64,000 nucleotides of DNA, taken from assembly GCA_977016875.1 (NCBI GenBank), contig CDRNST010000282.1:806001-870000 (forward strand), read 5' to 3'. The position numbers and the translations under genes were made by a program. Under the pieces are notes generated by a model, which was given only the letters and a program-made list of their open reading frames with translations, made no database searches and was not told the DNA's origin. Shown piece by piece: positions 257 to 50,536 of the stretch. Position 1 is the first letter of the stretch, and every line of letters starts with the position of its first letter. This DNA comes from Pavona decussata. Its lineage: Eukaryota.

Positions 257-523
257 TTCTATCGCAAATAACTGTCTACCTGACAAATGGCAATGAGACG
301 GTCCTGGAAGGTGGTAATGTGTCTTTGTACTGTGATATATCTGGGTTTCCTAAACCAACCATTACCTGGTCAAAAGATGGTGAACCTATTGATGAACCTG
401 TTCAGAACAGTCGCTGGTTAAACTTCATTTACATCAAAAGAGACGTGGCTGGGAATTACAGTTGCCATGCAAACAACACGTGTGGAAAAAGAGACTCTGA
501 AGTAAAAAGAATTGATGTGCAGT
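257..523 (+). CDS. Gene A Ig exon (I-set/C2-like)
   Basis: ttccag|...|gtaag; [21 protein letters not shown]...[13 protein letters not shown]. Confidence 0.92.
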
Positions 524-3500
524 GTAAGGACTATTCTTGTTAACACACGTTTCCATATCTCAAACTGACTTTGGACACCTTGTGAGATTTAAATAAATTA
601 GTGTTGCAGAACTTCATTTAGTAGGCAGAGAACTGAGTGAAGAAAGTGCCATTTAAGCAAGGAACTCAACAGCGTTTTAGGTTTAAGCACAGGGTTAGCT
701 TCATTGATTGTGATGTCCATGTAAACCTTAACAGCTAGTCCTTGGTCGTCGGTGTAATGTAAGGATAGCAGAAATGAAGCAAAGGACTCAAATTCAAGGC
801 GCACACTATTCTGATCTTTTCCCTTCTTTTAATCTCTTTTACTAAGTTTTACTTTATACAATTTCAAGTGAAAGACAAAAGTCAGTTGGGCATATGGAAA
901 CGAATGTTAACCGACCATTTTTCTCTAACTTGTCTTTCTAATTAAAATGTATCAAGCTTTGCTAAAATAGTGAAACAAAATGTGCAGTCTTCAACGTGAA
1001 ACGACTTGCTGGTAAGTTTCCGTGAAGGGAAGAACTCATTGTACTTTCTTTCTTGATCAGGAAGTTTCTTATTAATGAGTACTGTAGTATACGCCAGCAA
1101 AAATTGTATTTTTTTAAGATTACTACAGTATGTTACTAGGTTTTTAAGAACATTCAATGAATCCTTTGATAGACTACTGTATTGGGGAATTTTTGTGGGA
1201 GCAGGGATGGCGCAGTGGTGAGAGCACTCACCTCCCACCAATGTGACCCGGGTTCGATTCCCGGTCTTGGCACCATATGTGGATTGAGTTTGTTGTTGGT
1301 TCTCGTCCCTGCTCCAAGGGTTTTTCTCTGGTTTTCCTCCGTCCACAAAAACCAACATTTCCAAATTCCAATTCGACCTGGAAAAAATGGAGAGAAGACC
1401 CACTCGGTGGATTCCACTGAAATTCTATTTATTTATTTATTTATTTATTTAGTTATTTATTTATTTATTTTTGACTTTGTTGTATTAATTTTATTTTCTG
1501 AGAAAATAAGTGTTTCATTAAAGAATCAGGTTGTTTTCTTAGTAAGTATTGCTTTGGAAGCAATGTCTAAATCTAAGCGGGGAGAAAAAGTGGGCTGCAG
1601 GTGTCTCAGAGGGTAGCTTTTCATAATCTAGATTTGAAACTAATAACCGTTCACACGAATGCACGTGTATGTAACTCATCCAAAAACTCGTGATATGCTG
1701 TTCATTTTGTTTTTCATAACATGCCTTCTTTCTGTGCAGATAAACCTGAAAATGTTGCTTTAAATGTGAACATCTCAAATACCAAAGCGTGTGCAGACGT
1801 TGTAGTAAGTTTCACGTGTACAGCTAAAGCTGCCAACCCAGAACCAGATAATTATACTCTGTATGAAAATGGCCACGGTGTGGTTCAGAATATGCAAAGT
1901 CCAGGAGTGTGGATAAGACGATTGAACACTGTTGGTGAAGTAACCTACAGATGCGAGGCTAGGAATTCCATAGGAAAAGATAGCAGCAACAATACCACTT
2001 TCACTGTGGAAGGTGAGTTTCACTGCAAGTGTGATGGCTTTGCATGTTTATATTCATTTGCAACGTCAATGTAAGCTGATACAAACGCAGCTTGAGTGTT
2101 CAAAGAAGGGCACATTGTTTACTTAACATCAATTTTGCCATGTCTTCAGAGAAGCACATATTTGTAAGACGAGATTGAGTCTTTTACAGCATGTCTTATC
2201 TTAAAATGAGCTTTTAGATACATCCAGTGCCTGTTTAAATCAAGTCGTCCGATCGTGCTTTGTTTCAATACATACCCATTCTGTTAATGCCCTGACCAAC
2301 TGTAGAATGTGTAACGTTTGTCATTGCAAATAAAATGATTATTTTCTTGACCTTGTTTTTCCAGTTCCAGTAAACATAACAGTTGATCTGGTACACGGCA
2401 ACGAAACCCTCGTAGAAGGTGGTGATTTGTCTTTGTACTGCAGTGCACCTGGTTTTCCTGGAGTATCTGTAGCATGGTCAAAAGTTGGTGGCAAAACACC
2501 TGATGCGCGAGGTTCCTGGTTAAACTTCACTCGCATCACGAGAGTTGAAGCTGGTGATTACATTTGCCATGGAAACAACACCTGTGGTCGAACGAGCTCG
2601 TCAGTGAGAAGCACTGATGTCCAGTGTAGGGGAATTTCTTCTTTTTTTAATTAAAATTTAAGCTTTGCTAAAAGCATGTTAACACAATATAGATTGGAAC
2701 TGAGGTTTAATAGGATAAGTTCGTTTAACAGGGATTATTTGTCGCTGTTTTATGGAGATTTTTTTCCCTTAATCAACAGCTTTGAAATGTTATGCATCTG
2801 TAGCATACATGTACGACGTTCTTTAGCAAAATACACTCGTTATGTAGTAATTTTAACATTTATGGCACCCATTGTTTTACGTAGGTCATTTACCATGATG
2901 TCAGAAGATGGCAAATTCAAATTTTTTTGTGCACATGCAGTGTAGTCAACATCGGCCCCATACATAATTTTTATAGTTAAAAGCAAAAACAGCGGAAGGG
3001 ATGGATACAGCGTTAATTTTCAAATGCCAAAAAAAACTTTTATTCTGTCTATTAATTTCTCCATATTGTGCTTTCTTTTTTGAAGATGAACCTGAAAATG
3101 TTTCTTTAAATGTGAACATCATCGTCTCAAACAACCAAGTGTGTGCAGATGTTGTGGTGAATTTCACATGTACAGCTGAATCTGCCAACCCACCACCACA
3201 CACTTATACTCTGTTTGAAAATGGAAGCCCTGTGGTTCAGAATATGACAAGTCCAGGAGGGATAAGACGATTGACCACTACTGGCGAAGTAACCTACAGA
3301 TGCGAGGCTAGGAATTCCTTGGGATATGATAGTAGCAGCAATACTACTTTCAATGTCGGAGGTCAGCTTCACAACGAACGTTTCTCTGATTACTTCTCAA
3401 ATTCACCGTTACACTTGTTGCATGGAAGCTGGTGCTTACATGTATCTTGGGTCTCCAGAGAAGGGCATAGTTGACGTCTGAAATGTCTAGATCCCTCAAT

Positions 3501-6500
3501 CATCCTTAATGGGAGGCCTAAGTCCATTAAAAGGTTACCATAAACCGCTTTCCAGTTGTGTTCTGTTAGGTTTTTTATTCAATAGTTTTCTGGTTCCACA
3601 TATTACTTTTCCCCCTAGAGAAAAGAGGCATGTCGCAGGGGCTCAAGCTGTGCAGCCAACATTTAGCGAGGGAATACAGACAACTGTCATGTCTCCCAGC
3701 TTTTTAGGCGTTTTTTCTAGAGTATGTCTGTCATGTGTCTTTTTGGTAATAGCGTTAAGGGTGTGGAGTTGATTCCAAAACTCAATGGTGACTTTTAAAC
3801 TCAAAGTCAGTGTATCCATTTCATTTACTTTGCATTGTTTCGGGCGCTGTAAAGAAATTCCTGTTCTCATTCAGGAAATGTCAGGAGACAAACAGAAAGT
3901 GTTCATGCTGATCTGAGACCCTAACAATCCGCTTGGTCTTTAAGATGCATATAAAATTACTAAATCGTGCTTGGTCTAGCTTAGTGAATGGAAAAAAAAG
4001 GCTACCTTATTATAGGAAATTAACAATGCACTTTATTAACGCGATTTTACAAAATTCGCGTTAATTTAATGTATCTGAATTAATGTTGATGAAAATTTAA
4101 TGCACGCTATTTTACAACATTGTTATTTTAAAGCACCGTTTTTTTCATTACAAAACCTTACTAGTTCATGACTCCTCTATTGGCTCTTCAGAGTCACTAT
4201 CTTTTGAATTGATAGGGTCTAGTGAGGCTGCAAAACCAAATTTTCGGCTTTGACAAAACTTAGAAATATCCCTGCACTTGTCGTTTCGCAGTAAATAAAG
4301 CAAGATGCTTATCGAAAAGTTCGCGTTAATTTTAATGCATGTAAACCAAAGTTTAGAAAAATTCGCGTTAATTTAGGGTAACGTATATTTTCTTCGCCTT
4401 GTCAACGTGCATTGTTAATTTGCTATAACAAGGTAATTAAAAGTTTGTTGTGGAGCGTTTTCAGTGTCCTTGATGGCTCAGTTTGCCGACTGTGTCAATG
4501 CTGTCATCTAGTGTCTGTTGCTTCTTACAAAGATTTTGGCAGGCACGCAAGCAAAATGTAAAAATTCATTTTAAGCAACTGAACTGATGTAATTTGCGAT
4601 AGTGGAGAATCTGCTCGAACAAGCATCACCAAGTGGTCCTTAGTCCCACTCTGCCTCTCCCATTAATTCACCATAGAGAGAAGTGTCTGGTAATCCATAC
4701 AGATGGCAGACACTACCTTGCACTTATGTTTAAGACAGCTGGGAGCATGATGTCTTGAAAGTGTAAACGACTGTTATTCTAATGAGGGCCTCAATTAATT
4801 GTCCCTGTTGTGTTTCAAAGTTCCTGCAGTGACAATTGAGAACGACGCGATTGTCGTTAAGGAGGGAAGCAACGTGACGCTCTTTTGCAAATTCTCTGGT
4901 TTTCCATCTCCAAGTGTTTCCTGGGTTAGTAACAAAAGTGAGCTGATGAAAGTAGGTGACATATGGCGGATACCGAACATCAGAAAAAATTACACCGGAG
5001 AGTACAACTGCTCAGCAAGCAACGCGTGTGGCAACGACAGCAAAAGAACAGTTATTGATGTGCAATGTGAGTCACTGTTCATCCATTAAAATACATTGTA
5101 AAAATAGTGAGGTACAAATTGTAAAATGTGACGCTATTGTAATTAGTCATTTTTTGTTTAGCCTAAACATTGTGATAAAAAACCCAATAAACTAAAGTTA
5201 TGAAATAAACAACCCTAGAGTTGTGTACTTAACAGTTCAATAATCAAACTGCGATTCTTTTGTCTTTGGAGTTTATTATTTTTTGTCGTGATTACTTGAA
5301 ACACGCAGCCGTAGCATCCATTGAACAAAGCTCCTATTTGGTTTCTTTGCTTTTCTTTCCTTTGTTTACTTTTGGTAAGATTTTTGTTTATTTCAGTGGG
5401 GCTTACATGTTTGTGATGCACAGTAGTGGGTCTATCTATAACAAGATAGTTATGCAGTTAATGTATTCTAGCAAGGTGAAATCAATTTACTTTTAAAAAT
5501 ATTTTGTAATGCACACCTCGGAGCTCCGTTCAGTTACGGTCTATGTATGTAACATGGTTGCCATAGCGTTGTTTGTCTAAGCGTTTTTTTGTCAATGCAT
5601 TGTGACACTTAAAATAATTGCTCTTTACAGAGCTATTTTTGACCGCCTTTCTATTTGAATCCATGTTCATTTGACCAAGCACTTTTGAGAATACGCCATT
5701 GGAGGTTACTTGTAAATCCTTAGTAATCTTTAGGGAAATAAGTTGTTGGCATCTTTGTTTTCAGGGCTAAGATATCGTGGAGTATTTTTCTTGCATAAAG
5801 ATCAAACTCAGAGATAATGGATAACTTCTTAAAATAATTCAGACATCTGTTTTTACGATATGGTAATGGTCATAATGCCTGGCTTATTGAGATAAATGTG
5901 GTGGTCCATTTGGATTGTCATCCCAAAGAAGTCTATTCAAATAAGCATAGATTGCACCATCATTATCATCATCAGCGTTATCATAGGAATAACAAAAAAT
6001 GCAAGCAATAATCATGATAATTAACAAATGAATTTAACGTAATATTACATTTTTCTCACACCAAACAAACAAAAGGGACAAAAAACAACGACGATAGAAA
6101 CTGCAACACTACCGCTGCTATTACTTAATCACTACCATGACTAACTGATTCAAACCTAGGGTGAACTCCCCATTTATGTGTAATTAGGCCTACGCTCTAA
6201 CGATTCATATTTTGTCACTGGTTCTTTTCAGATCCTGCATTGGCCACACGTAGTGGTCGGAATTTCACTGTGTCCCTTGAAAGCTCTGCCTCTTTTGACT
6301 GCACTGTTGATGGAAACCCTGAACCTAACATTACATGGTACAAAGGAAGTACTGCTGGCGGAACTGTACTCTCCCTTGAGAAAGCCTTTATTTTTCTGCA
6401 GACCAAGTTAGATAACACGGGCTGTTATACCTGTTTTGCAAGTAACTTTTTGGGAACAGACACTATCACCGATTGCCTTAAAGTCGGTGAGTCATTTACA

Positions 6501-9500: not shown

Positions 9501-12416
9501 CAGCGCCTTAAGGATGACTCTTTACCGGACTTTCGGTCAGAAGATCGAAGGGTTGATGGTTCCAGGTTACTTGGAACCATCTACTGTTGTCTCGTTAGAG
9601 AGAAACTTTCCTCTACGTCCTGTTGGAATACTGTTGAGGGTAACCCCACGGTAGACTAGCATCCCATCCAGGGGGAGTAGCAATACCCTTAGTTGGTTCA
9701 TGCTACAGAAACCGGATTCCACTAAGGCTTGAAGTGCAACTTTGTCTTATTAGGCACTTTAAGCAACCTCGACGGCTACGCCTACCAAAACGTCACTCGA
9801 AAGTATAAGTCTACTCTTCTTGAACCACTTCGCGATTATCCCAATTCATTCAACTTGCACAACGCGGCTGAACTATCCAGGTACAGAATTGGTAGGAGCC
9901 GCATTCTAGTTTAGACAGAGTATGTGCTCACATTCTCGACAAAACCTTGGAATTTGGTCATTTCAAGTTGTTTTACCGAGGATGGCGAGGAAATATACCA
10001 AAATTTAAAACACACGTGCATGGTCGTTGTTTTTCTCGTATTAGGCTGATTTAGCAACAGAATGGGAACGTCATTTGAGGACGCAAAAGCGCGCGGAATA
10101 GTCTGGATGCGAGTCTATTTCGACTATCTTATGGGTATTCTTGATGCGTGCAACTACAACGCCGCAAAACTAAAGCTGTAATGACGAAAACAATCACTCT
10201 GCACGTGCATGTTAACTTTTGGTACACTTCTTTGCTGTCCGCTGTAAAACAACAACGTGAAATGACCAAATTCTAGGTTTTGTGATGAACTCGAACACAC
10301 GACAGTGAATTTTCAATTCTCTTTCTTTAGTTGAGTTGGACCACACAACTACCAATTTGGTTGGTTTTATTTGGTAGTTCACTATTTCTGTAGAAGTTGA
10401 ACTAGTTGAAGTAATCTCGAAGTAGCACAAATATAAAGTAAAGTTATATTTTCAAGTTACCTTTTCGTTGGCGTTGCAGCCGTCGAGGCTTAAGTTCCGT
10501 AGTAATACACACCCCTTCTCCAGAGAATGTGAAATTATGAAGCCGCTAAACTTCTGCGCAATATCGACAGCCATTGGTGTAAAACATTAGCTTGTAATAG
10601 GTATTTCTAATAGGTATCTTGTGACAATTAACTGGTCCATTAGTACAATGCAGCAATTTAGCAGTCTGTTTCTAATTTTAGGTGCAAACCAGGCAGTGCG
10701 ATCATTGATCTCGTTTTGCGATTCAATCGAAGTGTAAGTGAAAGCAAGGTAATATCTGCTCTGAAGACTGCTGCGCAACAAGACAAATTTGGCATCTTTA
10801 AAGTGGACCCCGAATCCACTAAGATCACCGAGCCTGAACCTACAACCAGAGGTACAGTAACACTGCTGTTTGTTTCTCTTTGGATAAGGAAAATGGCTTC
10901 ACTCCCAAAAGCGCCTGCAATTAAAAAATCTTAGTGCAAAGTGAGTTTCGCAGGATACCGAAAAACAAAATGTATCTGTTTTGTTGGCTCAGCTATGTTA
11001 GGGCAATCTTGTTTGCTGCTTTGTTTGGGGTGACTTTAACTGACGTTTCGACAACCTGAGCGGAAGTCATCTTCAGAGTCAAGTGAACTGTGGAACGTCA
11101 GTAGATGGTATATATGTCTCTGGTTGTTAACGTGACAGGTCAATGAAGTCAAGATGTTATTGTTCATTTGTCACTAAGCCGTGATGTTATTGGCTATGAA
11201 GACTGTAAAAAGTGATTGGTACGTTTCGATCTGTCTTTTGTTAGTCAAAAGTCCATGTGTCCTTTTTTAGTAAACTGTCTATTGTTGGTCTGTTTCGTTG
11301 ATGTTGTCAATGAGTCGTTTGTATGGTGCAGGTAGTTGTAGGCAACGGTTGAGTGGTGTTTGTTCTAAGTTAGTAAACCAGCTGTCCAGAATGAGTCGTT
11401 GATAGTAATTTGTACTGTAGGTAATGCACTTGGCAGAGTCCCAGTCGATTCTGTGGTTCGTTTGTAAATGGTGCTCAGCAATGTGATTGTTGATATCACC
11501 ATTTCTAGTTGCTCGTTTGTGTTCAGTCAGTCGTACGTTTAAATTTCTGCAGGTCTTCACCAATATAAGTGGCCTGGCAGTCACAGCATTTGATCTTGTA
11601 AACTGCTCTCTGTCTGCGGTTCGTTTCGTCTTTCTCCTGTACGTTCGTCAGCAGTTGTCGTGAAGTGGTAATTAATTAATTAATTAATTAATTAATTAAT
11701 TGAACCAAAACCTGTATTTTTTTTTTTTTTTGCTATGATGATAGTTTGGTTGAAAAGAGATTTCAAGCATGCCACGGCTAAAAAGACATCTAAATTTGCA
11801 GTTAGCATGCCAAACTTGTGCTACTCAATGTTTTTAAACTTAACCGTTTTTATCAAGGGTAGCAGACTAGCATCAATGATCATAGAAAAAAAAATTGAAA
11901 AAATAATAAGTAGTGTCCAAAGTATCTTATTGTTTATTGTCTCACTTTTCATAGAACTGCTGCCCACACCTAGCACTGGCGAATCATCGGAACCTACTTC
12001 AAAAGGTAACCATTTGCTAGAAGTAATCTGTAACGTGATCCAATAAANNNNNNNNNNNNNNNNNNNNNNNNNNNNNNNNNNNNNNNNNNNNNNNNNNNNN
12101 NNNNNNNNNNNNNNNNNNNNNNNNNNNNNNNNNNNNNNNNNNNNNNNNNNNNNNNNNNNNNNNNNNNNNNNNNNNNNNNNGTTTTATTCCTTTTTTTAAG
12201 ATTTTTAACTTTGTGTATATGATTGATTTTTTTAATAAGAATAGCATAGTAACTTTATCAGAAAAAAAAAGAAACGGCTTGAAAGTTCTCTTTTTTATCG
12301 AAATAAATTGTAAATAGTTTTTTAATAGTTCTTATTTCTACTTTTAACTTGTGAATAGCAATTTGTCTGAAATATGGTAATAAAGAGTTCTCATTATTTA
12401 AAAAATTATTATTATA

Positions 12417-36476: not shown

Positions 36477-39152
36477 CCCATTTTTTCAGGCTTTCTTTTC
36501 TTTTCTTTTTGGTAATTAGCTATTTGGTAATTATCGGCAATAAGGTTTTTCCAACCATGCTTGTCTAGATTTTGATGAGAAATTTTAAGTTTTTCACTAC
36601 TAAAGATTAAATTTCTACACCATTTTAACACCTTTTTACTCATTCCGACTCCTCTCAAGTCAATAAGAATGGTTTGTATAGTTTTCTGCACTATTAGAGA
36701 ATAAAGAACATTCACGATAAGATCGCCAATACAAGATTATAAGACGTCATTATTGCACTTTGCAAACTTCAGAGAACATCTCAGGAACACAAAAAGAAAA
36801 AACCCAGACTTAGTTTAAAAAAAGTTACAAAGTTAAAAAATCGAGTTCACATCTATTATTTGTTACCTATTGTGAAGATTTCGTAGAGAACAACTCCATA
36901 ACTCCATCTATAAGAAAGTGGAAATAAAGAATGATTTCCTGTTAGTTAATACATATAATGACAATATGTTTATTCAGATTTCCTGAACCGTTTCGACTTT
37001 CTGTGGAAGTTAATGGGTAAAATCAGCTGTTAAACAACTCTGCTACAGTTATACTTACACATCACTCTTGGTGGTGTATGTTCCATACAACAACGATTCA
37101 TAAGCTGTCCACTTGACTGGTAGCCGACCCTAATTGTTGAAAGGTACATGGATTATTTTAGGTTTATTAACAAGTACAATCAGATTAATGTAACACTTTT
37201 TCATTATGTTTACATGATTTTTCGATTTTTCTAATCTCGTTATTGCTTTGAGAGTTTATATATGTCATTTGGAAACGGGGAAATAATGTCTCTTTTCTCA
37301 AAGAATGCAATACCTCTTCAAATTAGCGAACAATATCACAAATTTTTTAGGACTTTTCTTAGTGTATTACCCGCGTTTTCCTTTCAAAGATGTTTTCTTG
37401 CTGCACATCCCTGGCCATTCCAAAGTCTGTCACTTTACACGTTTCTCCTTCTCCAACCAATACATTACGAGCAGCAAGGTCTCGGTGGATGATCTGTAAC
37501 GAAACACTCATTAGTTCCTAATGGCTCGAGTACGCCAGGCCATCCTGATGCAACTGGTTTTTACTGTTTTTTTTTCTGTGGTTTTGTTGGAAAGTTGTTG
37601 TAATATCAAGAGGTCCACTAAGGGCATTTTCATTGCTTATGTGCCCCTTATGGCTCGTGTACGCCGGGACATCCTCGTGCAACTGACGGCTAACCTGTTT
37701 ATAAGACTTGATTTTATGGTGCCCCTTCCAATCTGGCTTTATTCATTAATGTATCTGCTAATGCATCATTACAATAGAGACTTCCCACTGTTTGTTTAAA
37801 ATGGATGAGATGAAGTCGGAATACTTTTATTCACCTTTCTGGAAGACAGATAACTCATCCCATCTGCGATTTGCCAAGCAAACTTCATCAGCTGCTCTGA
37901 TGTCAGGGTAGTCTGGGGTTTGATATCCGGGTCTTTGTAATAAGTGTCATTCAATCCACGGCTCTTCCTCAGGTAACCCAGTAGATCCCCATACGGGACA
38001 TACTCGATCAACACCATCAAAGGCTCTGAATTAAAAGAAGAGACAACTCAAAGAGTTGCGCTTTGCCAAAAAGTCGGGGGCAATTTATGTTATGTAATCA
38101 ATCCGTTGCTTCTATATAGCATACATCTCAACAGATAGTACTTCTGGAATGAAAATTGAATGCGCTGTTTTCATCATTAATCAAACTCTGGGATCGTGTC
38201 GATGGATCTTTCCAAGGCATTTGATACCTTGCCACACGAACTGCTGGGGGCCAAGCTCAAGTCCTATGGAGCTGACGGCAAAACTACCGATCTAGTTCAT
38301 GACTACCTTGCAAATCGACGTATTTTCATAATAAACTGCTATCAAACTGCTATCATCATAAACTCTGGAACCGTGTTAAGTACTCTGGGATGGAAATACC
38401 TTCCATACACGAAATAACTTCTTGCAATGGAAATCCTGTGTAAGTCGCAAATGGCTGTCTATCAGAAAAATTAAAAAAAACTACCACTGAGGAACTTTTA
38501 AACGTGATTATGTAGGATAAAACTGCTTACCAGATTCAGTGACACATCCCAGCAGTTTGATTACGTGATTATGAGGTTTTAGCGTCTTCATCAATTGAAG
38601 TTCTGATAGTAAGTCCTTCTTGTCTGTTTCGGGGGTGTTTTCTAAAAGCAAGCAATGAGGCAAATTATAACTGAGAACAGAGCGAGTTGGCAAGGCATTA
38701 TCCAGTTAACAAAAGAAAAGGTCTCCATTGGAAACAATAAATAGCATTAAGTATGGATGAAACACATCTCGTTTACGTCCATGAAACAAACAATTTTTTT
38801 GCCAATACAAGAAAACAACTCAAACCAGTTTCAAAAAAGTGTTACCTTTCAGCATTTTAATGGCAACAGTCGTGTGTCCGGACCTGAACGGAAGTTCTAT
38901 TGCCGTTCCCTTAGCAACCTGACCAAAAGCGCCTTTACCAATAACCTTTTCCACAGTCACGTTGTTTTTTGCTACTTCCCAGGAGCGTGTCTGTAGATTA
39001 AGGGGGGCGTATTCGGCAACTGGAGAAGGACTCTGTGATTGACCGTTGCGGTTTTGTAGGTCCATGTATGTAGCACCGGACATTGTTAGCTGTTGTGTGG
39101 AGCTACTTTGACCAAGATGACTGGCATTAACGTCGTCCATTTCTACTTCATT
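33472..39152 (-). CDS. Gene B tyrosine kinase domain and C-tail (9 exons)
   Basis: [15 protein letters not shown], alphaC Glu (LLSELQLM), [32 protein letters not shown]...RP; ends [15 protein letters not shown]. Confidence 0.95.
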
Positions 39153-48100: not shown

Positions 48101-50461
48101 ACAAATATCTAGCAACTAGAAGCTATATGATTACTAGAAAACAATAGCAATGTATTAGTAATAATGTCAACCAAACTATGAGTTCGAGATTTCTATCAAA
48201 TAATAGCTAATGAGGGGGCAACCGAAATCAACGGACATCTAAATCCTAAATCAAACAACATCTAAATTGAACGTTAACTTTAAATTGTAAGTAACTTTAC
48301 GCCCCGCGGGCAGTAAATGACTCACCGACTTTAAGGCAATCGGTGATAGTGTCTGTTCCCAAACTGTTACTTGCAGAACAGGTATAACAGCCAGTGTCAT
48401 CTAACTTGGTGTGCGGAAAATTCAAGGCTTTTCCAAGGGAGAGTACAGTTCCACCAGCAGTACTTCCTTTGTACCATGTGATGTTAGGTTCAGGGTTTCC
48501 ATTAACAGCGCAGTCAAAAGAGGCAGGGCTTCCACGGAACACAGTGGAATTCCGACCACTACGTGCGGCTAATGGAGGATCTGAAAAGAACCAGTACAAA
48601 AAAATATTAAATGTTAGAGCGTAGGCCTAATTACACATAAATGGGGAGTTCACCCTATGTTTGACAAATTTAGTCATAGCAGTGATTAAGTNNNNNNNNN
48701 NNNNNNNNNNNNNNNNNNNNNNNNNNNNNNNNNNNNNNNNNNNNNNNNNNNNNNNNNNNNNNNNNNNNNNNNNNNNNNNNNNNNNNNNNNNNNNNNNNNN
48801 NNNNNNNNNNNNNNNNNNNNNNNNNNNNNNNCATTAAATCCATTTAATTATTATTATTATTATTATTATTGTTATTATTATTATTATAAATTAATAACAA
48901 TAATAATAATAATAATAATAATAACAATAATAAATAGTGACAAACTTTATTAAAATCTCCTAAGAAAACCTGTTTATAAATCTTCACCTATTTACAAATA
49001 ATAATATATGACAAATTATCATTCCACCATCGTATACTAAAATTTTGATGAAATGAAAATATTAAAAGATACCTAAGAAAACTAATTCACAAGCTCAAGC
49101 CATCATTCATTTTCTAAACTAAGCGGACACACGCTTGGTTAGTGTTTAAGCGGCAGTCATCAATGAAATCCTCTAGTGGAATTTTGTGGAAAAGAGTCCT
49201 GGAACCTCTTACGCATGCGTGTACCGTCCTTGAAATCTCGAAAGAAAGCAATGCTCTAATCCAAGTGATAGTACTAGATAGTCAATGCTCATAACTGAAT
49301 TAAATCCATTTCTTCAAGGGAATGGAGAACTGAAGTTGAAGATTGGAAAATGATGCTTGAATTCGATCAAATATCCATGTAAGATGAAGAAAACCTTCAG
49401 CCTACAGGATAATTTTGATGGCCATCATACAAGTTTTGTAAAAAAAGATGTTGCTTACATTGTCTTTCATTTTCTGACGCTAACCTGTCTCATCTGCCTT
49501 ATAATTTAAAGTAATGTGGGTAGAGGGGCCAGCTGACGCCCTTAAATGTCCATGCTTCCATTATTCTCCATTGCAGGTTGCAGGTTGCTGCTGGCACTGT
49601 TTGCAAGATGGGTTTTTAGCTGGTATTACCTAAGGCGAGCCAGTAGTAAGGGCTAAATTTAGACATTATCGTACTGTTGTCTAGTCTACTTCAAAGCCGT
49701 TATTAGGGTCATCAGGCAACGCACCTGAGGAGTATTTTTTATTCACCTCCTGGCATTGTTTTGGTTTTCGCACAAGTTTTTCTACTAATTTTTCATAAAT
49801 AAAGTGACTTATTGGAGCTGTGTATTTGGCAATTTGCGATTAACTAAGAACCATTGCTCACCAGTCAGTATCAGTGATTACTGGTAGATATTTACCTTGC
49901 CACAGCACTATACAACTTGTTAAATATCAACAACTATCCAGCTCAGTTTACTTTGTTGAACGATTGATAAATAAATTATCTTGGGCTATCCATTTCCCCT
50001 GGCCTTGCTTTTTCAGGTCATACTTAATGTTGTGAGGAGTATTCCACTCTTTTAATTATATACTGTATATGTTGTACATGCCATGGATGCAATGGCCAAA
50101 ACCTGATTCGCTGGACTTGTCTGGTCATTTTCCTCCGTATGCACAGTTGCATTACAGTTGCAACACGACATCAACTTACAGAATCATGAATTTAATGTAG
50201 GACTTTCTTTCTCTTTTCTTTCTGATTACTTTCTTTCTTTTATCTAAATACAGTACCATAGAAGTTTCAGTAATTTTTAAAATTGCAATATTATAGAATT
50301 AATTGCAATTATTAAAGCTAACATTATCAGTGTCACTGAAAAGTACACTGAGAGTGTCATTTAGTCCATTGCTTACATGTATTATTACTATGATCATCAT
50401 CATCATCATCATCATCGTTATTATTAGGATGATGATGATAATGATGAGGATTATTATTATT

Positions 50462-50536
<75 letters not shown>

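Follow-up and report, generated by a model that had tools for sequence, protein, structure and literature searches.

We analysed a stretch of 64,000 nucleotides from the cnidarian Pavona decussata (positions 806,001 to 870,000 of the forward strand of contig CDRNST010000282.1, NCBI GenBank assembly GCA_977016875.1), which is referred to as the window in the following and has a G+C content of about 37-39%. Judged from the nucleotide sequence, the window probably contains two convergent paralogous receptor genes, termed here gene A (plus strand) and gene B (minus strand), both with working coding exons for immunoglobulin (Ig) domains. These Ig domains appear to evolve under weak selection that preserves the fold, with a surface that changes at a near neutral rate and an overall ratio of non-synonymous to synonymous substitution rates (dN/dS, omega) of about 0.7, a reading that we hold with moderate confidence.

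Gene A carries seven Ig exons, six of which lie within the window on the plus strand, namely exon 1 (257-523), exon 2 (1740-2012), exon 3 (2365-2625), exon 4 (3086-3361), exon 5 (4821-5066) and exon 6 (6232-6486). Its exon 0 is located just upstream of the window (L031:8678-8953), and further downstream the gene has a membrane-span exon and a tail exon. Gene B, on the minus strand, encodes Ig exons 0 (53587-53862), 1 (52775-53041), 2 (51463-51741), 3 (50828-51088) and 6 (48326-48580), followed by a membrane span and by tyrosine-kinase exons (PF07714), of which seven Pfam-matched segments at 34252-38957 on the same strand served as a within-gene control. Exons of the same number pair with one another between the two genes, the partner of gene B exon 0 being the gene A exon upstream of the window. 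Gene A exon 4, which is a paralogue of exon 2, and gene A exon 5 are without a gene B partner of their own in the window. A tandem second copy of a 4.9-kb unit with Ig exons 0-3, called copy C here, occupies 54224-59140 on the minus strand (exons at 58499-58774, 57688-57954, 56345-56623 and 55710-55970) and is 97.5-98% identical to 49346-54228; its exon 1 at 57688-57954, the third copy of this exon, is identical to 52775-53041.

All exons are bounded by AG and GT sites, and 15 of the 15 Ig exons in the window retain their frame, these sites and the Cys and Trp residues. Every Ig exon has a length that is a multiple of three, is in phase 1-1 and open, and matches Ig_3, I-set or Ig_2 above or near the Pfam cut-offs. 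Specifically, exon 257-523 scored 56.5 bits for Ig_3 (PF13927; cut-off 30, 4e-15) and 46.9 bits for I-set (PF07679; cut-off 23.7, 2.9e-12), and exon 6232-6486 scored 47.0 bits for I-set and 42.4 bits for Ig_3. Both exons belong to the immunoglobulin superfamily (IgSF) with an I-set/Ig_3 domain. An initial annotation of the window had paired exactly these two exons with their gene B counterparts and described the frames, splice sites, Cys and Trp residues as retained in both pairs. Our analysis confirmed this and the stated coordinates, and showed phase 1-1 and lengths in multiples of three.

The same annotation had counted 11 non-synonymous and 2 synonymous codon differences between 257-523 and 53041-52775, and 17 and 4 between 6232-6486 and 48580-48326, and had concluded that dN/dS was about 1 or above. 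The counts proved exact (15 of 267 and 23 of 255 nucleotides differ, respectively). Database searches were run one exon at a time, and the scripts treated each exon as a partition of its own, adding up counts and likelihoods across them. For the paired exons 0, 1, 2, 3 and 6, the NG86 omega was 0.43, 1.38, 0.72, 0.44 and 1.13, with dN values of 0.073, 0.063, 0.179, 0.081 and 0.100, respectively. Pooling the five pairs gave an omega of 0.68 at a dN of about 0.10 (nd 94, sd 39), with a two-sided Fisher p=0.049 in the direction below 1. Neither any single one of the five paired Ig exons nor the pool was significantly above 1. Exons 1 and 6 have the two highest omega values of the five, and two other pairs fall inside the same interval, 257-6486. 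Tested against omega=1, exons 1 and 6 gave Fisher p=0.74 and 1.0. Pairwise maximum likelihood estimates (GY94) were 1.08 for exon 1 (p=0.92 against 1), 1.39 for exon 6 (p=0.53), 1.28 for both together (p=0.57) and 0.77 for all five exons (p=0.22).

The ratio of exon 1 exceeds 1 because merely 2.5 synonymous changes were counted there (5 in exon 6), and its dN of 0.063 is the lowest of the five exons. The aligned introns of genes A and B provide a neutral yardstick with K=0.122 (386/3423). Against this background the introns flanking exon 1 are significantly more diverged than the exon itself (103/1006 versus 15/267, p=0.023), and exon 6 is diverged like its flanks (23/255 versus 157/1485, p=0.51). 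We therefore consider the values of 1.1-1.4 in exons 1 and 6 to be probable sampling noise, with no demonstrated excess of amino acid changes. The proposal of a dN/dS of about 1 or above was not borne out, since the pooled A-B omega is 0.68-0.77 and the family-wide estimate is 0.72 with omega=1 rejected (p=3e-4). Pooled pairwise values among all copies ranged from 0.45 to 0.80, and per-exon values under the one-ratio model M0 on the family set from 0.52 to 0.94.

Homologues were retrieved by a word search with exon 1, which found short open reading frames (ORFs) in other assemblies, and the contigs of these yielded blocks with Ig exons ordered 0-1-2-3-4-5-6. Two inverted copies (L032 and L034) are located on one contig of ERZ26692669, one block (L033) derives from ERZ26692694, one is a Logan fragment (L036), and a further block, L035 (ERZ25073805 ctg132990:446047-466271), represents a third full seven-exon Ig block. 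All 32 of the 32 exons in these five other loci are open. The contig ctg132990 also holds a further kinase gene (L037, ERZ25073805 ctg132990:55379-75786) as well as the sequences of A, B and C of the window with zero mismatches. An assignment of L035 and L037 to another species was rejected, as they are on the same contig-level record as the window genes and are thus same-genome paralogues; the codon-model results are independent of this choice. Because the L035 block and the L037 kinase gene share a contig with the window genes, the locus is, as read from the sequence, a multigene cluster of small size. L035 itself was not found in its own genome assembly, where by arithmetic its position would be beyond the end of the contig of the window. 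Two other sources of comparison were considered and rejected. As population alleles, the other assemblies give no independent information because they are identical to the window in the compared exons: L048, L049 and L050 match it with zero mismatches and represent the same individual, and L051 is a mosaic without exon differences. Site models over all Ig paralogues of the genome were not feasible, since beyond the three window copies the nearest own-genome matches are at most 52% identical and too diverged for tests based on dS. Close homologues from the other loci were used instead.

Signs of pseudogene decay were looked for in both copies. In the A-B introns we counted 109 gap openings in 3544 aligned bases, a rate at which the paired exons, with 1331 bases, should contain about 41 indels. 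There blastn scored three gap openings (Poisson P=2e-14 with all three counted), of which one is a real in-frame indel of 6 bp and a +1/-1 pair is read as an alignment effect. By arithmetic from the intron rate, about eight indels are expected in each of exons 1 and 6, and zero were seen in either. The five exons contain no stop codon, an outcome with a probability of 0.016 when the observed substitutions are placed at random, and all AG/GT sites are retained. Neither copy resembles a pseudogene at the sequence level; A and B alike appear to be functional.

The kinase exons of gene B provided a second reference, in line with a comparison that the initial annotation had proposed. Seven Pfam-matched segments (254 codons) were set against five homologous loci with intron alignments of 82-90%, and showed a dN of 0.024-0.029, a dS of 0.145-0.19 and an omega of 0.14-0.19. 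In terms of omega, which is about 0.6-0.8 for the Ig exons, the outer part of the receptor evolves at four to five times the pace of the kinase, and the ratio of non-synonymous to synonymous changes differs between Ig and kinase exons (Fisher p=0.002-0.007).

The replacements between genes A and B largely spare the core of the domain. AlphaFold 2 (AF2) models built from alignments of 25-27 sequences were confident beta-sandwiches with strands A-G (predicted local distance difference test, pLDDT, of 86 for exon 1 and 88 for exon 6). The C, W, Y and C of the Cys(B)-Trp(C)-Tyr-x-Cys(F) core are invariant in 27 related Ig exons, and none of the 28 replacements falls into a column that is invariant across these 27 (C, G, W, Y, C, N, G, V). 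Exon 1 has 11 replacements (residues 5, 13, 16, 24, 26, 58, 63, 66, 68, 79 and 84), which avoid every invariant or near-invariant column (25, 29, 31, 37, 65, 67, 69, 73, 76 and 87) and are located in loops or on strands at positions not in register with the Cys, Trp and Tyr of the core, with burial read from strand alternation rather than computed. When the variable sites were mapped on the models, as the initial annotation had suggested, the core was thus found to be largely spared, but residues 16 and 52 of exon 6 are exceptions. Residue 16 is Glu in gene A and Gly in 24 of 25 related exons, where it is nearly invariant, and one of the 17 exon 6 replacements, F/L at residue 52, is a conservative change at a core-register position. 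Gene A has eight derived replacements in exon 6, several of them at otherwise conserved positions (G16E, G49E, L52F, N53I, P55L). On sequence grounds they hint that the membrane-proximal Ig domain has been relaxed further or has shifted in function. A core that is kept and a surface that is free to change fits the expectation from relaxed drift and that from an arms race equally.

Site models were fitted to the family with a self-written partitioned codon likelihood, in which each exon had its own IQ-TREE topology and its own rescaling of branch lengths, kappa and the omega classes were shared between exons, and codon frequencies were F3x4. M0 gave an omega of 0.716 and rejected omega=1 (twice the difference in log likelihood, 2dlnL, 13.0, p=3e-4). 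Under M1a, 37% of codons were assigned to omega 0.10 and 63% to omega 1, and across the site models about 37-40% of codons were constrained and about 55-63% neutral. These estimates come from fixed topologies with merely rescaled branch lengths and few taxa, and exon exchange can inflate such tests.

Our analysis did reveal evidence for such exchange and for a variable number of copies. The blocks of genes A and B are 82-89% identical including introns as far as 7988/45221, and beyond this point the sole remaining similarity between the genes is an exon match of 81% at 10695-10818. The Ig-coding block including its introns was probably copied or converted fairly recently, given an intron K of about 0.12. 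For gene B exon 2, the nearer match is gene A exon 4 (dN 0.137, block identity 85.6%), and gene A exon 2, its partner by position, is more distant (dN 0.179, 82%). The exon trees are mutually discordant as well, and both results suggest an exon-level exchange among repeats and between genes. Gene B (48581-50827) lacks Ig exons 4 and 5, both of which occur in gene A and in each of the four other full blocks (L032-L035). A masked run at 48692-48831 cannot conceal the two exons, since a comparison of coordinates with L049 shows that the span comprises the same 140 bases there. The tandem arrangement of B and C was also found in the contig-level record (L049/L050). As phase 1-1 is kept throughout 49346-54228 and 54224-59140, read-through would add four in-frame Ig domains. 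In L051, from a second assembly of lower coverage, a single unit is composed of C exon 0 and B exons 1-6 with zero differences in the compared exons, and this single-copy state reflects either structural variation or a collapse during assembly. An additional tandem copy of Ig exons 1 and 2 is located at L033:8293-9634 (ERZ26692694); together with the duplication of B and C it indicates that the number of domains is variable in this family.

Three further observations were made at the locus. Residue 19 of gene B exon 3 shows a Gly-to-Cys change that is specific to gene B and absent from copy C and all homologues, resulting in an odd extra cysteine. Within the long intron of gene A between the stalk and membrane-span exons, long ORFs of 282, 229 and 320 amino acids are encoded at 13477-17386 on the minus strand with a G+C content of 43-47%, and this stretch is probably a transposable-element insertion. 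An ORF of 220 amino acids at 62181-62843 (minus strand), upstream of copy C, is probably transposon-derived, because its counterpart in L049-L051 is listed with the Pfam domain HTH_animal.

Taken together, we favour a moderately supported reading in which the Ig domains are under weak, fold-preserving selection. About 40% of the codons, comprising the beta-sandwich core, the Cys-Trp-Cys residues and the turn glycines, would be held at an omega of about 0.1, while most surface codons would drift at or near the neutral rate, and the two together would yield the overall omega of about 0.7. Relaxation as opposed to driven change of the surface is our inference here, as is the expression of both genes. 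Several results weigh against this reading. When changes were polarised, 38 non-synonymous and 10 synonymous changes were assigned to the gene A lineage, a ratio near the neutral site ratio, against 22 and 10 in the gene B lineage and 20 and 9 that were ambiguous (binomial p=0.05 for non-synonymous changes in A versus B). The N-glycan sequon of exon 1 is at residue 26 in B and C and at residue 66 in A. Without the distant homologue, the M0 omega rose to 0.85 and was indistinguishable from 1 (p=0.16). Moreover, M2a placed an extra 4.7% of codons at an omega of 3.9 (against M1a, 2dlnL 9.26, p=0.0098), M8 was preferred over M7 (p=0.007) and over M8a (p=0.003) with a class of 5.9% of codons at 3.5, and the M2a signal persisted without the distant homologue (p=0.024) or without copy C (p=0.016). 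These last results are those expected if a subset of exposed Ig residues were under diversifying selection, with A and B as a paired inhibitory and activating system chasing a variable ligand such as a pathogen, a symbiont or non-self tissue, so that the high omega would arise from a constrained core combined with surface sites under positive selection. We regard this as the less likely explanation, though one to be taken seriously. It would also account for an Ig omega four to five times that of the kinase, for recurrent changes at exon 6 residues 11 and 68 and exon 1 residue 16, for glycan sequons being gained and lost, and for copy and domain numbers that differ between assemblies. However, none of the sites in all seven exons reached a posterior above 0.9, the best being 0.86 at exon 1 residue 53, and overall omega is below 1. 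The gain in log likelihood for exons 0 to 6 was 0.9, 1.75, -0.23, 0.43, 0.83, 0.94 and 0.02, so exon 6 contributes nothing to the signal, and exons 1 and 6 alone gave p=0.09 (the other five exons p=0.055). In addition, fixed per-exon topologies and the evident exon exchange can inflate these tests. The comparison of M7 with M8, which the initial annotation had put forward as a check, thus preferred a class with omega>1 but came with no well-supported site and an overall omega below 1. A small class of this kind is suggested (p about 0.003-0.02), and the support that it lends to positive selection is weak. The step from there to true diversifying selection at a few exposed sites, with the pair corresponding in a cnidarian to the paired immune receptors of vertebrates, or serving allorecognition or the recognition of symbionts, and with the kinase as its activating arm instead of an ITAM adaptor, is speculative and in our view unlikely. 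A robust diversifying signature, if true, would indicate that a reef-building-coral-like animal has a receptor engaged in an arms race or in self/non-self recognition. Neither an allorecognition receptor nor a paired immune receptor has, to our knowledge, been defined in reef-building corals.

Neutral decay of one copy, as a pseudogene or through disuse of its Ig exons, would produce some of the same observations, in that the comparison of A and B alone cannot reject omega=1 (p=0.22), exon 6 diverges at the pace of introns, gene A exon 6 has lineage-specific replacements (G16E, L52F, N53I, P55L), and gene B in the window is without exons 4 and 5. We nevertheless judge it very improbable in view of the intact frames, splice sites and Cys/Trp residues of all 15 Ig exons, the single in-frame indel and the absence of stops described above, the clear purifying selection on the gene B kinase, and a family omega significantly below 1. 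Even less credible, to the point that we give it hardly any weight, is that the pairs are an assembly artefact, i.e. haplotypes or mis-joined copies of one gene. The units of B and C are 2-2.5% apart, as haplotypes would be, and are single-copy in L051, but genes A and B are about 12% apart in introns, inverted, and have different 3' halves (tail versus kinase). Furthermore, the contig-level record holds the same A, B and C with zero mismatches, and two inverted copies are also found on one contig of another assembly (L032/L034). What stands of the initial interpretation is a fast ectodomain with core, frames and splice sites retained, but the claim of omega at or above 1 fails once all five exons are counted together. 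The caveat of relaxed selection that accompanied it holds and is the better-supported reading, and an Ig stalk with a constrained fold and a relaxed surface accounts for the data no less well than an arms race does.

The best structural matches of the exon 1 model were NEGR1/IgLON, CD22, CEACAM5, RAGE, Robo1 and FGFR (TM 0.7-0.8, 26-35% identity), and in its fold the model resembles I-set/C2 Ig domains of the generic type that occurs in receptors and adhesion proteins. Because these matches spread over many unrelated Ig proteins, no specific family was assigned. Alr1 and Alr2 of Hydractinia are defined by extreme allelic polymorphism, concentrated in the distal domain. The Pavona genes resemble the Hydractinia Alr genes in being cnidarian IgSF membrane proteins in a multi-copy cluster. 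The most N-terminal Ig exon seen here, exon 0, is among the slower ones (omega 0.43-0.61). The Alr paper discusses ITIM-type motifs (immunoreceptor tyrosine-based inhibitory motifs) and describes unusual IgSF domains without the canonical residues (PMC9546547), whereas the Pavona exons are canonical I-set/Ig_3 domains above the Pfam cut-offs.

The closest analogue would be the vertebrate paired Ig receptors with converted ectodomains and relaxed constraint, which the two genes appear to be most like. There are differences: gene B has its own tyrosine kinase (PF07714) instead of the immunoreceptor tyrosine-based activation motif (ITAM) or adaptor-recruiting membrane span of the KIR, LILR, Siglec and CEACAM type, and in contrast to vertebrate Siglec and CEACAM pairs the domains are seven and I-set-like, with no V-set lectin domain, in a cnidarian host. 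For genes A and B the sequence suggests that the block was copied or converted but does not demonstrate repeated conversion. As for the elevated omega of paired receptors, we found 0.68-0.85 in the Ig exons and a class with omega>1 at p=0.003-0.02, with no site at P>0.9. According to work on CEACAMs, paired members with ITIM or switch motifs (ITIM/ITSM) and activating members co-evolve (PMC5112662). Like Siglec-11/Siglec-16 and CEACAM1/CEACAM3, genes A and B are neighbours whose multi-Ig outer parts are nearly identical and whose cytoplasmic signalling parts differ. They also share introns across the ectodomain block only, with the similarity ending before the signalling part, and their shared exons show an elevated, near-neutral rate of non-synonymous change, comparable to the converted ectodomain exons of Siglec-11/16, which were reported to evolve under relaxed functional constraint (PMC5701461).

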